A stretch of DNA of 64,000 nt from Hypanus sabinus (Eukaryota), in the NCBI RefSeq assembly GCF_030144855.1, contig NC_082710.1, positions 26,598,001-26,662,000 on the forward strand, read 5' to 3'. Position numbers and translations under genes: made by a program. The notes under the pieces were generated by a model. The model searched no databases, had not been told where the DNA came from, and saw only the letters and a list, made by a program, of their open reading frames with translations. Shown here in pieces: positions 6,499 to 9,030 of the stretch. Within the stretch, counting starts at the first letter, position 1. Every line of letters begins with the position of its first letter.

Positions 6499-9030
6499 TC
6501 AGTCATTGGGTAGAAGTAGAATAACTTCTGTAACTGGCCCTTGGTAAATTTTCACATCGCCTTGGTCGGTAGTCTTCAATTCGATCTTCCTGACATGTCC
6601 ATCCCCGCTAGGGAATGTAGCAGTGATTCTGGCCATTGGCCAGCTGTTGCGGGCGATTTGCTTGTCCCTGAGCAGGACTAAGTCTCCAACTTGAAGATTC
6701 CTGCCGGGTTCTGTCCACTTTTGTCTCTGTTGCAACAAAGGTAGATATTTTTGTCTCCAGCGAGACCAGAACTGATTTGCCAGAGCCTGGACTTGTCTCC
6801 ATTGCTTTGTGTACAAATCCTTGTCTGAGAAGTCTCCTGGTGTAGGAGGTGCTCCTGCCTTCTGTGTAAGGAGCATTGATGGTGAAAGTATGAAGGGGTT
6901 TTCTGGGTCAGAAGACACAGGTAGGAGTGATTGTGTGTTTATAATGGCTGTGACCTTTGCCATTAGAGTGCACAGTACCTCGTGGGCCAATCGGGTGCGT
7001 TGCTGCATCTCAGGTTTCCTTTTCTGGGTTTTCCGTAAGGACGTGAACCGTTTGACTGCCTGCTCTTTGTTATCTGGTGAGCGCTGGCGTGGTTCTCTGA
7101 AAGGCAATGGGGCAACCCCATTATTTGCTTCATCTCTGAAGACCTTGGTGTCTTTGGTTTTTAAAGAAATGGTATCTTGAGCTGATTGTGCAAGTTTGTT
7201 TCCGTGCTCGGTTTGAACGAAAACTGACTGACCTAGCGTCTCGTCGGTTACTTTACGCTTGGTAATGTCTTGTTGTGCTTCTTTAGGGTACACCTTAGTG
7301 AGGCAGATCTTGGAACAAGAACGGCTTGACTGAGTTTGACCGCAAACTTCTGTACAGTTCGAGCTGACAATTGTTGTCCTGGAGTGAGCCTCTCCCTCCC
7401 CGCCGTCCTGTTGTGGGGGTGAAGGAGCGTTGTCGGTTTGCGGTGGACAATCCTTGCTAGAGTCGTTGCTAGTTGTAAGGGCTTCAGTCTTGAGCACTGA
7501 GGCGGGTTTATCAATGTTGAAAACATTCGAAGCAGATCTACTTGGCTTGGTGTAAATCGTACTGCTTCTTGGACCCGCGAGGCTAGGGTCGTTTCGCTTC
7601 TTCGCCTCCCTGCACACAAACCTAGCGAGCAGCTCAAAGGGAGGTGGTTGATCATCGTGCTCTTCCTTGTAATCTAAAGCAATGGACAGCCACCTGTCCT
7701 GCAGCCCAAAAGGAAGTTTGTCCACGACTTGTCTAATCCCGAATGGAGTATCTAGGTATACTAGACCAGCTGAGTAGCCATCTTCTTTGGCGCCTTTGAT
7801 CTCCATGAGTAAATCTCCGAATTCTCTTAACTTAATGTGATCTTTGGCTGACACCTCAGGAAAGTTTCCCAGACGTCGATATAGCGCCGCTTCAATAGCT
7901 TCGGGGGACCCATAGTCCTCCCGAATTCTCTCCCACGCTTTGCTTAAGGCTAGTTCGGGTTCGTTGATGTACACTGAACGTATGTGTCTCACCTGGTCGC
8001 GTGATTCTTTCCCCAGCCATTTCGCCATAAGGTCCAACCTTTGGGTTGCACTGAGCTGGACTCCGTCGATCGCGTTGGTGAATGTGGAGTACCATGCACG
8101 GTAATTTTCGGGTTTATCATCAAACTGGTACAGTCCCGAAGTGACGAGATCCCGTTGTGCTAAATACTGCATCGTGGGATCGGCTGTAAGCGGCATGCGG
8201 GCTGGAGAAGTACGTTGGCGCCTATATGACTGAGAGCGCACGTTTCTCATGGAATTTGCCATCCTGGATTCGACCTCTGCGTCTCTTTGCATCGAACTTT
8301 GTAAGTTTGGTGTCAAGAAGTATTGGTTGTCAGCTCTTTCATTCTTGACTTCATCACGGAGCTGCGAGGGTAAATTTTCTTCCTCGTATGGATGTGATGC
8401 AATCGTGACTCTCTGAGGTTCCTCGTAGCTGGGGAAGTTATCGAATACGTATGGAGAGGGGAGACGAGCCTGCCTGTCTATTTGATATTGTACATAGTCA
8501 CTTGTGCGTTCCAGTCTGGTCCTTTCTAAAGTAGATCTTACTTCGGTCAGATCACGCGACCCTTCAGGTTCTTCTATGTACTCTGCTTCCGCCAAGGCAG
8601 CTTCTTCTTCTCTTTCTAGCTGCAGCACTTGCAACTCTGTCGATATTTTTGCCATTTCCAACTGGGTTTCGGCTTCTCTGGCAGCCTTTTCTTTCTGGAT
8701 TTCGGCTTCTCTGGCGGCCCTTTCGGCTTCTCTGGCAGCCTTTTCTTTCTGGATTTCGGCTTCTCTGGCGGCCTGTTTCATTTTCAAAACTGCTTCTTGT
8801 CTGGCGTAACGCAGTCGCACCTTGGCGGCTTCTGCCTTGGCTCTTGCCTGGGTGGACTTACTTGATGTCGCTCTACTGCCCTTGTCGCTGGGCGCCATCG
8901 ACTTGATCCCGGATCGAGCTGACATTGCAGCACTTGGAACACCTGATAACGCCTGGGTGGGCTTACTTGATGTCGGTTTACTGCCCTTGTCGCTGGGCGG
9001 CGTCAACTTGATGCTGGATCGAGCTGACAT
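6499..9030 (-). CDS. 843-aa BEL/Pao Gag-integrase C-terminal fusion protein lacking PR, RT, RH and IN core
   Basis: Open ATG-to-TGA ORF; coiled coil, DUF1759-like Gag (FDDKPENYRAWYSTFTNAI), pre-RT linker relic (VAPLPFREPRQR), DUF5641-like C-terminus (QWRQVQALANQFWSRWRQKYL...NLQVGDLVLL...WPMARI...DGHVR). Confidence 0.9.
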   Translation of the reverse strand: MSARSSIKLTPPSDKGSKPTSSKPTQALSGVPSAAMSARSGIKSMAPSDKGSRATSSKSTQARAKAEAAKVRLRYARQEAVLKMKQAAREAEIQKEKAAREAERAAREAEIQKEKAAREAETQLEMAKISTELQVLQLEREEEAALAEAEYIEEPEGSRDLTEVRSTLERTRLERTSDYVQYQIDRQARLPSPYVFDNFPSYEEPQRVTIASHPYEEENLPSQLRDEVKNERADNQYFLTPNLQSSMQRDAEVESRMANSMRNVRSQSYRRQRTSPARMPLTADPTMQYLAQRDLVTSGLYQFDDKPENYRAWYSTFTNAIDGVQLSATQRLDLMAKWLGKESRDQVRHIRSVYINEPELALSKAWERIREDYGSPEAIEAALYRRLGNFPEVSAKDHIKLREFGDLLMEIKGAKEDGYSAGLVYLDTPFGIRQVVDKLPFGLQDRWLSIALDYKEEHDDQPPPFELLARFVCREAKKRNDPSLAGPRSSTIYTKPSRSASNVFNIDKPASVLKTEALTTSNDSSKDCPPQTDNAPSPPQQDGGEGEAHSRTTIVSSNCTEVCGQTQSSRSCSKICLTKVYPKEAQQDITKRKVTDETLGQSVFVQTEHGNKLAQSAQDTISLKTKDTKVFRDEANNGVAPLPFREPRQRSPDNKEQAVKRFTSLRKTQKRKPEMQQRTRLAHEVLCTLMAKVTAIINTQSLLPVSSDPENPFILSPSMLLTQKAGAPPTPGDFSDKDLYTKQWRQVQALANQFWSRWRQKYLPLLQQRQKWTEPGRNLQVGDLVLLRDKQIARNSWPMARITATFPSGDGHVRKIELKTTDQGDVKIYQGPVTEVILLLPND

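Follow-up and report, generated by a model that had tools for sequence, protein, structure and literature searches.

A non-autonomous BEL/Pao retrotransposon copy with one continuous Gag to integrase C-terminus reading frame in the stingray Hypanus sabinus

Background

Mice and cereals are known to harbour non-autonomous LTR elements that still translate part of gag-pol in frame; to our knowledge, they have hardly been described for BEL/Pao or for cartilaginous fish. The closest analogues of the locus described here are the mouse IAP 1-delta-1 element and the wheat Sabrina and WHAM elements. In IAP 1-delta-1 (I-delta-1), an in-frame internal deletion fuses gag to distal pol, and the element is non-autonomous, its gag and pol proteins coming from full-length relatives (PMC6466679). 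The fusion protein has been shown to be cis-acting, and the 1-delta-1 subtype is behind most new insertions (PMC6466679). In wheat, RLG_Sabrina_SA and RLG_WHAM are high-copy semi-autonomous Gypsy elements with an intact Gag-Pro ORF and no reverse transcriptase (RT) or integrase; these families co-evolve with an autonomous partner, and their shorter derivatives encode other short proteins (PMC9744471). Ty1 provides a further Gag-derived product, p22, which a functional element expresses through an internal transcript and whose inhibitory effect has been demonstrated (PMC4599808).

The window analysed here is a 64-kb stretch of Hypanus sabinus DNA, and the locus of interest lies at 6048-9461 on its minus strand. 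Like IAP 1-delta-1, the window copy joins gag to distal pol by in-frame deletion. However, IAP belongs to the class II endogenous retroviruses whereas the window copy is BEL/Pao, a single 1.9-kb deletion in IAP contrasts with a nested series here, and the architecture of the window copy is a singleton. The wheat families differ in being plant Ty3/Gypsy elements for which no in-frame fusion to the integrase C-terminal domain has been described, and Sabrina_SA and WHAM have kept the protease that is missing from the window copy. With TRIM and LARD elements the copy shares the bounding LTRs and, presumably, the reliance on a partner's enzymes, but those elements are non-coding and contain no long ORF, whereas an 843-codon ORF takes up 96% of the internal region here. 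We consider the locus to be, most likely, one retrotransposed copy of a non-autonomous stingray BEL/Pao family, and a rare or unique deletion variant within it.

Results

Boundaries of the element

The element is a 3,414-bp LTR retrotransposon with paired LTRs, a target site duplication (TSD), a polypurine tract and one long ORF. An earlier note on this DNA had described 843 stop-free codons between 393-bp LTRs with about nine differences and a perfect TSD, and each of these points was recovered. The 5' LTR in element orientation (9069-9461, minus strand) and the 3' LTR (6048-6440, minus strand) are both 393 bp long with TG...CA ends (termini TGTG...GACA), and they are 97.7% identical, differing by nine substitutions and no indels. 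Four of the nine differences fall into two CA/TG dinucleotide pairs, as would be expected had each derived from an ancestral CpG. The same 5-mer, ATCGT, lies immediately outside both LTRs (6043-6047 and 9462-9466), and the TG...CA LTRs with their short TSD (5 bp, where 4-6 bp is expected) fit a BEL/Pao element. A host gene, a domesticated gene or a fixed restriction-factor locus was rejected as an identity for the locus on account of the intact LTR pair and the TSD.

The polypurine tract (AAGCGGGGAG on the element strand; 6441-6450, minus strand) was read directly from the sequence and adjoins the 3' LTR. At the primer-binding-site position (9058-9068, minus strand), 11 nt are perfectly complementary to an 11-mer inside the LTR (9189-9199 and 6168-6178), and no TGG tRNA-type primer site is present there. 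Conservation of the leader that follows the 5' LTR extends to a teleost locus (L002), and in the teleost relative the complementarity between LTR and leader is down to 7 nt, at an equal distance from the LTR end. A tRNA scan and an Rfam scan of the 64-kb window gave no match, and no further copies or solo LTRs of the element were found in it.

Composition of the reading frame

The single ORF (843 codons plus a TGA stop; 6499-9030, minus strand) stops 58 nt short of the 3' LTR, and the runner-up ORF in the window encodes 222 aa. A 105-bp tandem duplication (8846-9055, minus strand), which takes in the ancestral start codon together with some 25 nt of the leader, has added 35 aa to the N-terminus; in many siblings the protein begins at the counterpart of M36. 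An N-terminal coiled-coil (residues 54-188; 8467-8871, minus strand) contains 33/54-nt repeats whose number varies between family members, and is followed by an all-helical, capsid-like Gag core (residues 285-480; 7591-8178, minus strand). The core holds a weak Pfam match to DUF1759 (residues 304-409; 23.1 bits, under the cut-off of 25.4), and alignments of the window Gag with full-length BEL/Pao polyproteins reached E-values of 1e-107 to 1e-120; it is homologous to BEL/Pao Gag, with a DUF1759-type capsid. The core is 88% identical to the H. sabinus protein P0007, the pLDDT of its 10-residue blocks is about 82-96, and its best match in the structural search was the PNMA2 capsid (TM 0.52).

The remainder of the ORF, likewise on the minus strand, consists of the linker between zinc knuckles and protease (residues 530-583; 7282-7443), an N-terminal remnant of RT (residues 584-677; 7000-7281), the post-core integrase segment (residues 678-741; 6808-6999) and DUF5641 (residues 742-837; 6520-6807). 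The RT remnant is 71-74% identical to residues 137-239 of the H. sabinus pol fragment P0272, and the integrase segment is 91% identical to the same protein from residue 1105 onward. DUF5641 was recognised by Pfam with E=6e-27 and 94 bits, a score equal to those of autonomous elements. It is modelled as an SH3/Tudor-like beta-barrel with strands at 784-838 (10-residue block pLDDT about 66-88) and with weak structural matches of the Tudor/KOW/PWWP-like kind. In the search with the full model all matches were weak (E > 1e-3), including those to the PNMA2 capsid and to Tudor/KOW-like barrels; they support the predicted domain folds and were not used to assign membership. No Pfam match to RVT_1, Peptidase_A17 or rve was found in the ORF, domains that are present in P0272, P0255 and P0118. 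These enzyme domains are absent because they have been deleted, and the description of the element as an enzyme-less BEL/Pao copy proved correct.

Three deletion junctions

The junctions were placed by alignment to B-type (see below), teleost and full-length BEL/Pao polyproteins. Three in-frame jumps had been proposed near 7445, 7282 and 6999, with loss of the zinc knuckles, of the protease, and of RT, RNase H and most of the integrase core, respectively; the alignment puts all three exactly there and sizes the losses at 69, 190 and about 865 aa. At J1 (P529|P530; 7444|7443), the 69 aa missing relative to P0001 (207 bp) include the CCHC knuckles. J2 (K583|E584; 7282|7281) removes the protease region and shows a single-lysine overlap at the breakpoint. 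J3 (Q677|R678; 7000|6999) lacks what corresponds to residues 240-1104 of P0272 and 882-1746 of catfish P0255, covering RT, RNase H and the integrase core, and has a QQ microhomology. All three deletions are in frame, and compared with autonomous BEL/Pao elements (catfish P0255, 1,915 aa; P0272) the window copy is without about 1,124 aa in total. What is left, namely Gag, linker, RT N-terminus and integrase C-terminus with DUF5641, is homologous to these elements, with 77-91% identity in the C-terminal segment and a conserved leader. The earlier remark that NGVAPLPF stands where a W is expected was also borne out (ANNWVAPLPF in autonomous elements, ANNGVAPLPF here). An artefact of predicted introns was rejected, as sibling gene ranges equal the ORF length: the sibling genes are single-exon (3,294 bp for 1,097 aa; 1,767 bp for 588 aa), and the deletions are therefore genomic.

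Distribution in the stingray family

The census comprised 113 related stingray proteins from Hypanus sabinus and Hemitrygon akajei, all of them annotated. J3 was present in essentially all of the roughly 110 proteins from the two species that span the site, and J2 in all members of the capsid-less, protease-less E-type (about 70 of the 113); in H. sabinus both occur at dozens of loci spread over different chromosomes. In contrast, neither J1 nor the architecture with capsid and without protease was found in any of the 113, so that a check of the junctions among relatives turned out positive for two of them and negative for the third. Copies with J1 may exist outside the annotated proteins. Since only J1 is private to the locus, the chance of a preserved frame is 1/3; the odds of 1/27 put forward earlier are arithmetically sound but presuppose three independent events at the locus, which does not hold for the inherited J2 and J3.

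B-type members (Gag-ZnK-PR-...-DUF5641) form a cluster of 47 sequences and resemble wheat Sabrina_SA, and E-type members (capsid-less coiled-coil-...-DUF5641) resemble the wheat non-autonomous variants. Each of the multi-copy forms either has both zinc knuckles and protease or is without the capsid. At least 12 entries make up a subclade that has spread with a frameshifted DUF5641; in this clade the nucleotides are mostly kept, the protein is destroyed and the ORF is shortened too. The idea that the family was selected for its own capsid tethered to DUF5641 conflicts with these forms and is not supported. In a tree of the 3' segment, the window copy is located near the base of the Hypanus radiation, and B, D and E types are intermixed within the starred clades. 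All four combinations of protease presence and frameshifted tail were found, and the structural types have therefore recombined.

The only annotated enzyme-bearing relative in H. sabinus is P0272, an N-terminally truncated protein with Peptidase_A17, rve and DUF5641 domains that shares 91% identity with the window copy over the common C-terminus. The suggested autonomous partner thus has a pol-bearing candidate, from which enzymes would be borrowed. A metagenome scan for relatives returned only a distant element (42% identity), and the exact 843-aa protein is missing from the protein collection. As judged by these comparisons, the family appears specific to dasyatid stingrays, with its nearest proteins in Hypanus sabinus. 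The data support a multi-copy non-autonomous BEL/Pao family with relatives on many chromosomes. The proposal of a replicating family is accordingly supported in part, for J2, J3 and the recombined types, but not for J1 and the architecture of the window copy.

Age and signs of selection

The locus itself is an ordinary insertion and a fairly young copy. In a simulation at the LTR-derived divergence, with indels not modelled, the probability of retaining no stop was about 0.30, and in so young a copy the open ORF therefore needs no selection. The 2.5-kb ORF contains no frameshifting indel, and observed/expected CpG ratios of 1.2 (LTRs) and 0.74 (ORF) fit a young copy.

Conserved sites have changed to different degrees along the ORF. 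The window copy deviates at 1 of 28 such sites in DUF5641, at 4 of 21 in the post-core integrase segment (including ARPL motif to TQSL), at 5 of 17 in the RT remnant compared with 4% in autonomous elements, and at 5 of 38 in the Gag core compared with a mean of 8.5% in autonomous elements; only two of the Gag core changes are private ones in otherwise invariant columns. Family members with an intact DUF5641 keep 27-28 of its 28 conserved sites, whereas losses in the RT remnant of these ORFs amount to 5-7 of 17 sites in Hypanus copies and 3 of 17 in Hemitrygon; the contrast gave p = 0.0015 for the E-type and 0.023 for the window copy (Fisher). Between Hypanus and Hemitrygon B-types, identity ranges from 56% to 87% depending on the segment (p ~1e-8), and the fixed deletions identified to date all preserve the frame. 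At the family level this pattern points to constraint, the conserved residues of DUF5641 being kept and those of the RT remnant lost. The DUF5641/RT contrast, the segment differences and the in-frame deletions would allow for selection acting either on a continuous ORF or on the C-terminal domain. Singleton versus shared amino-acid variants in Hypanus were, however, even between RT remnant and DUF5641 (chi-square p = 0.59), and a relative-rate comparison with teleost outgroups, which has low power, indicated no clear acceleration in the RT remnant, the integrase C-terminus or the Gag core.

Discussion

The family would have arisen from an autonomous element that lost the J3 region in one old in-frame deletion. 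J2 is a second deletion, removing the protease and common to the abundant short form. The window copy has kept the capsid core, carries J2 and is alone in having J1, the 207-bp loss of the zinc knuckles. In sequence it is intermediate between the forms with Gag and those without a capsid, and it hence looks like a survivor of the parent lineage of the short form. The element would be transcribed from the 5' LTR, its RNA packaged in particles made of Gag from sibling or autonomous elements, and the copy made and inserted by RT and integrase of a P0272-type pol-bearing partner, giving the 5-bp TSD; we infer mobilisation in trans. J1 is compatible with an origin both before and after insertion. 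The ORF is open because J2 and J3 were inherited in frame, the private J1 happened to be in frame and the copy is young. As the combination of deletions is found in no other protein examined, nothing shows selection for a special fusion protein.

The window type could instead represent a replicating subfamily selected to translate a Gag-DUF5641 fusion with an effect on the RNA that encodes it, on the model of IAP 1-delta-1 (PMC6466679). The healthy Gag core, whose fold is modelled with high confidence as capsid-like, the fully conserved DUF5641 and the in-frame state of every junction would agree with such a subfamily. We nevertheless regard it as unlikely, given that neither J1 nor the architecture recurs among the 113 siblings, that the abundant forms are capsid-less or retain zinc knuckles and protease, that the clade with a frameshifted DUF5641 spread nonetheless, that Hypanus amino-acid variation is even across RT remnant and DUF5641, and that chance suffices for the open ORF. 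A dominant-negative or defective-interfering role, in which a knuckle-less capsid would enter particles together with partner Gag and so poison them, seems very improbable. The intact capsid core without zinc knuckles invites comparison with Ty1 p22 (PMC4599808), likewise a Gag-derived protein short of full Gag that could disturb particle assembly, the analogy being structural only; but the LTRs and TSD mark an ordinary recent insertion, there is a single copy, and expression, conservation at an orthologous locus and selection are all without support.

Selection across the family for an uninterrupted frame, and for no particular protein, is a possible if rather doubtful explanation. In a single-ORF element, out-of-frame deletions might leave a long untranslated 3' region and so open the genomic RNA to decay, or might abolish co-translational capture of the RNA in cis, and the DUF5641 stretch might act mainly as cis-acting nucleic acid beside the polypurine tract. 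Four distinct deletions are in frame (J1, J2, J3 and the capsid-core deletion), the stop codon lies close to the 3' LTR, the frameshift-tail clade has kept most of its nucleotides and not the protein, and the RT remnant decays while DUF5641 does not. Against this, ascertainment is strong, since only long annotated ORFs were sampled and out-of-frame derivatives would escape, and the frameshift clade spread with an ORF that was shortened as well. By analogy with IAP 1-delta-1, one might go further and suppose a cis effect of the translated product on the RNA encoding it as the reason why the family is kept in one frame, with an intact SH3-like DUF5641 at its end; the window copy would then be a living intermediate, with a capsid but no nucleocapsid knuckles, and DUF5641 would have a partner- or nucleic-acid-binding role separable from integration. 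We hold this to be improbable, and prefer to see the locus as a deletion variant mobilised within a non-autonomous family.

The interest of the stingray family lies in its being a nested series of Gag-PR, Gag-only and capsid-less forms, with DUF5641 intact or frameshifted, which recombine with each other. Given genomic DNA of its members, such a series could show which parts of the retroelement proteins are needed in cis, and could yield the first functional handle on DUF5641.

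Structure of the inserted element

On the minus strand of the window, an ORF of 843 codons runs from ATG to TGA (6499–9030), the runner-up within the 64 kb encoding only 222 aa. Two direct repeats of 393 bp (LTRs, 6048–6440 and 9069–9461) with TG...CA termini differ at nine positions and show no indels, the TSD ATCGT lies directly outside both, and on the element strand a polypurine run, AAGCGGGGAG, abuts the 3' LTR, the stop codon of the ORF lying 58 nt upstream of this LTR. The LTRs, TSD and purine run thus identify 6048–9461 as an LTR retrotransposon insertion of 3,414 bp. 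No further copies or solo LTRs of the element were found elsewhere in the 64-kb window. CpG is undepleted, with observed/expected ratios of 1.16–1.24 (LTRs) and 0.74 (ORF), as would suit an element that is young or unmethylated. A 105-bp tandem duplication (8846–9055), found in only some siblings, adds 35 aa at the N-terminus by making what was ancestrally leader and start codon part of the ORF, and the 33/54-nt repeats of the coiled coil (8634–8806) differ in copy number among copies. In another part of the window (18350–20334, minus strand), two adjoining ORF fragments with RVT_1 and an ALKBH8_N-type domain are probably a decayed non-LTR (LINE) element, and a run of 258 N at 50578–50835 is an assembly gap or masked.

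Deletion junctions and predicted protein

The junctions were defined by aligning the window protein with P0001 (an H. sabinus relative of 1,097 aa) and teleost sequences, and all three jumps claimed in the earlier note, like its 843-codon ORF, its 393-bp LTRs with nine differences and its perfect TSD, were borne out; the gaps are clean. J1 (P529/P530, 7444/7443) lacks 69 aa including the CCHC knuckles, J2 (K583/E584, 7282/7281) lacks 190 aa of the protease region, and J3 (Q677/R678, 7000/6999), with QQ present on either side, lacks about 865 aa. The extent of J3 follows from P0272, an H. sabinus pol protein with Peptidase_A17, rve and DUF5641 domains, of which residues 137–239 match window residues 576–678 and residues 1105–1273 match window residues 675–843 (91% identity). 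Full-length polyproteins of 1,650–2,080 aa align with the window protein in three blocks, the last beginning at window residue 673–681 in every case and representing the final ~165 polyprotein residues; kept and deleted parts together come to roughly one autonomous polyprotein in length. The element is classed as BEL/Pao on its termini, Gag and DUF5641, its enzymes being gone by deletion; TRIM/LARD and domesticated-gene identities were both rejected.

Pfam placed DUF5641 at residues 742–837 (94 bits), with a DUF1759 match that stayed below threshold at residues 304–409. An AlphaFold model from a 34-sequence alignment (mean pLDDT 62) contained a confident long coiled coil (residues 54–188), a confident all-helical core (285–480), disorder spanning J1 and J2 (488–607) and a small beta-barrel (784–838), the vicinity of the RT remnant being modelled with low confidence. 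Among PDB structures the core best matched the PNMA2 capsid, and DUF5641 best matched barrels of the Tudor/KOW/PWWP type, in all cases weakly (E > 1e-3). The ORF would encode a capsid-type Gag that has no nucleocapsid knuckles and is followed by a long disordered linker and an SH3-like barrel. Pfam DUF1758 did not match the protease region in P0001 or in the alignment consensus, and the site at which a D-S/T-G aspartic protease motif would be expected is occupied by ILDDQSN, which is conserved from stingray to teleosts in this vertebrate BEL/Pao clade.

Shared and private junctions in the family

Searching proteins gave about 87 clusters belonging to two dasyatid stingrays (Hypanus sabinus and Hemitrygon akajei), alongside BEL/Pao polyproteins of teleosts, and a motif census covered the 87 clusters and 26 extra cluster members (113 entries). 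J3 occurred in essentially all members spanning that site, Hemitrygon included, and is the sole junction of the B-type, which retains Gag, knuckles and protease; one 90%-identity B-type cluster comprises 47 sequences from many loci, about 98% identical. J2 was present in every short-form E-type (450–640 aa, ~70 of the 113 entries), which also lacks residues 236–534 (capsid core and knuckles), while the D-type retains the protease and has no capsid core. J1 was found in none of the 113 entries, and none of them joins the window copy in the class with capsid core present and protease absent. In two siblings the gene range equals the ORF length; the deletions are therefore genomic and predicted introns are ruled out as their source. 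The earlier note had reckoned that three jumps would all preserve frame about once in 27 by chance, an argument inapplicable here because J2 and J3 were inherited already in frame and J1 alone is private (chance 1/3); the locus had, besides, been chosen for its long ORF.

In the 313 aa of the 3' segment common to the family, the window copy is 94–96% identical to the nearest E-types and 91% to P0001, and a Hemitrygon-rooted tree of this segment has it branching close to the base of the Hypanus radiation. Its capsid core is nearest to that of P0007/P0067 (87–88%), a minor B-lineage of H. sabinus with which the window copy has in common the PQTDN motif just ahead of the linker. The E-type junction (...ERTDN/APSPP) fits a deletion at (T/A)DN microhomology in a parent resembling the window copy. 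On the simplest reading, the window copy would descend from a Gag-bearing, protease-less intermediate ancestral to the E-type, and would then have acquired its private knuckle deletion, before or after insertion.

Recombination and proposed mobilisation

Relatives are spread over many chromosomes, and well-supported clades of the 3' tree mix structural types. A frameshifted tail (...ANGQNHCYIP) that cuts DUF5641 after ~40 residues, and so removes most of it, is shared by a well-supported clade of at least 12 entries (H. sabinus P0068, P0070–77, P0081, P0085 and P0004) and sits on E-, D- and B-type backbones. Protease presence and tail type are found in all four combinations; since each character is a unique event, the pattern implies that the structural types recombined with one another. 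Template switching between co-packaged RNAs is the classical route to such recombination. The P0037 locus (a 91-kb unplaced H. sabinus scaffold) holds a pair of E-type genes of 566 aa each, separated by 2,654 bp, which suggests that tandem amplification also contributes to the family.

Most probably the window copy was mobilised in trans, and it would have been packaged by sibling or partner Gag and copied and inserted by partner RT and integrase; what is observed for this model is the termini, the TSD, the polypurine tract, family membership and a pol-bearing H. sabinus relative. The RT-integrase region of the lineage is represented by one annotated H. sabinus protein versus well over a hundred non-autonomous ORFs, a gap that may be due in part to a bias of annotation against repeats. 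In P0272 this region (865 aa) is 79–80% identical to catfish/cyprinid elements (P0255, an autonomous catfish polyprotein, P0260 and P0256), a high value, given how distant rays are from teleosts, that may reflect horizontal transfer.

With regard to priming, no TGG-type tRNA primer site follows the 5' LTR. The 11 nt right after this LTR (9058–9068) are perfectly reverse-complementary to an 11-mer inside the LTR (9189–9199 and 6168–6178) ~120 nt upstream, a match of which shuffles predict 0, and the stem closes an RNA domain of 130 nt (z = -2.5). Self-priming of the Tf1 kind, or a U5-leader stem, is suggested by this match. A teleost locus (L002) has a conserved leader but retains complementarity of only 7 nt, at an unchanged distance from the LTR end.

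Possible selection on the coding sequence

The LTRs diverge by 2.3% as a pair (1.15% per LTR), and four of the nine differences form two CA/TG dinucleotide pairs, as CpG decay predicts. Divergence at this level, simulated on the actual ORF as substitutions only, kept it stop-free in 30% of trials, so that the open frame at the locus is explicable without selection. Within Hypanus, singleton versus shared amino-acid variants were even over the linker, RT remnant, integrase C-terminus and DUF5641 (p = 0.59).

For the long term, sites at least 90% conserved among 26 enzyme-bearing (autonomous-type) relatives were scored for change. The RT remnant had changed at 5–7 of 17 sites in Hypanus non-autonomous copies and 3 of 17 in Hemitrygon (autonomous mean 4%), the integrase helices at 3–4 of 21 and 1–2 of 21, respectively (~4%), DUF5641 at 0–1 of 28 in non-autonomous copies with an intact domain (~4%), and the Gag core of the window copy at 5 of 38 (autonomous mean 8.5%). 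RT remnant and DUF5641 differed by Fisher test (E-type, p = 0.0015; window copy, p = 0.023), and segment identity between Hypanus and Hemitrygon B-types ranged from 56% (disordered middle) to 87% (protease). These segment contrasts indicate that Gag, protease and the stretch coding for DUF5641 have come under some constraint. A signal of this kind would also arise if elements recombined with autonomous ones, or if sequence close to the polypurine tract acted in cis as nucleic acid; as the frameshift-tail clade demonstrates, spread does not depend on an intact DUF5641 protein.

Relation to known systems

The nearest analogue of the window element is the mouse IAP 1-delta-1 subtype, a non-autonomous gag-pol fusion created by an in-frame 1.9-kb deletion, whose fusion protein is cis-acting (PMC6466679). 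The wheat Sabrina_SA and WHAM families, which encode Gag-Pro only and have shorter variants coding for other proteins (PMC9744471), parallel the stingray B- and E-types, and Ty1 p22 is the model of an interfering truncated Gag (PMC4599808). Overall, the observation of an enzyme-less Gag-integrase-CTD fusion was confirmed, and its interpretation as a selected non-autonomous family was supported in part. The locus itself carries modest weight; the family is somewhat more interesting.
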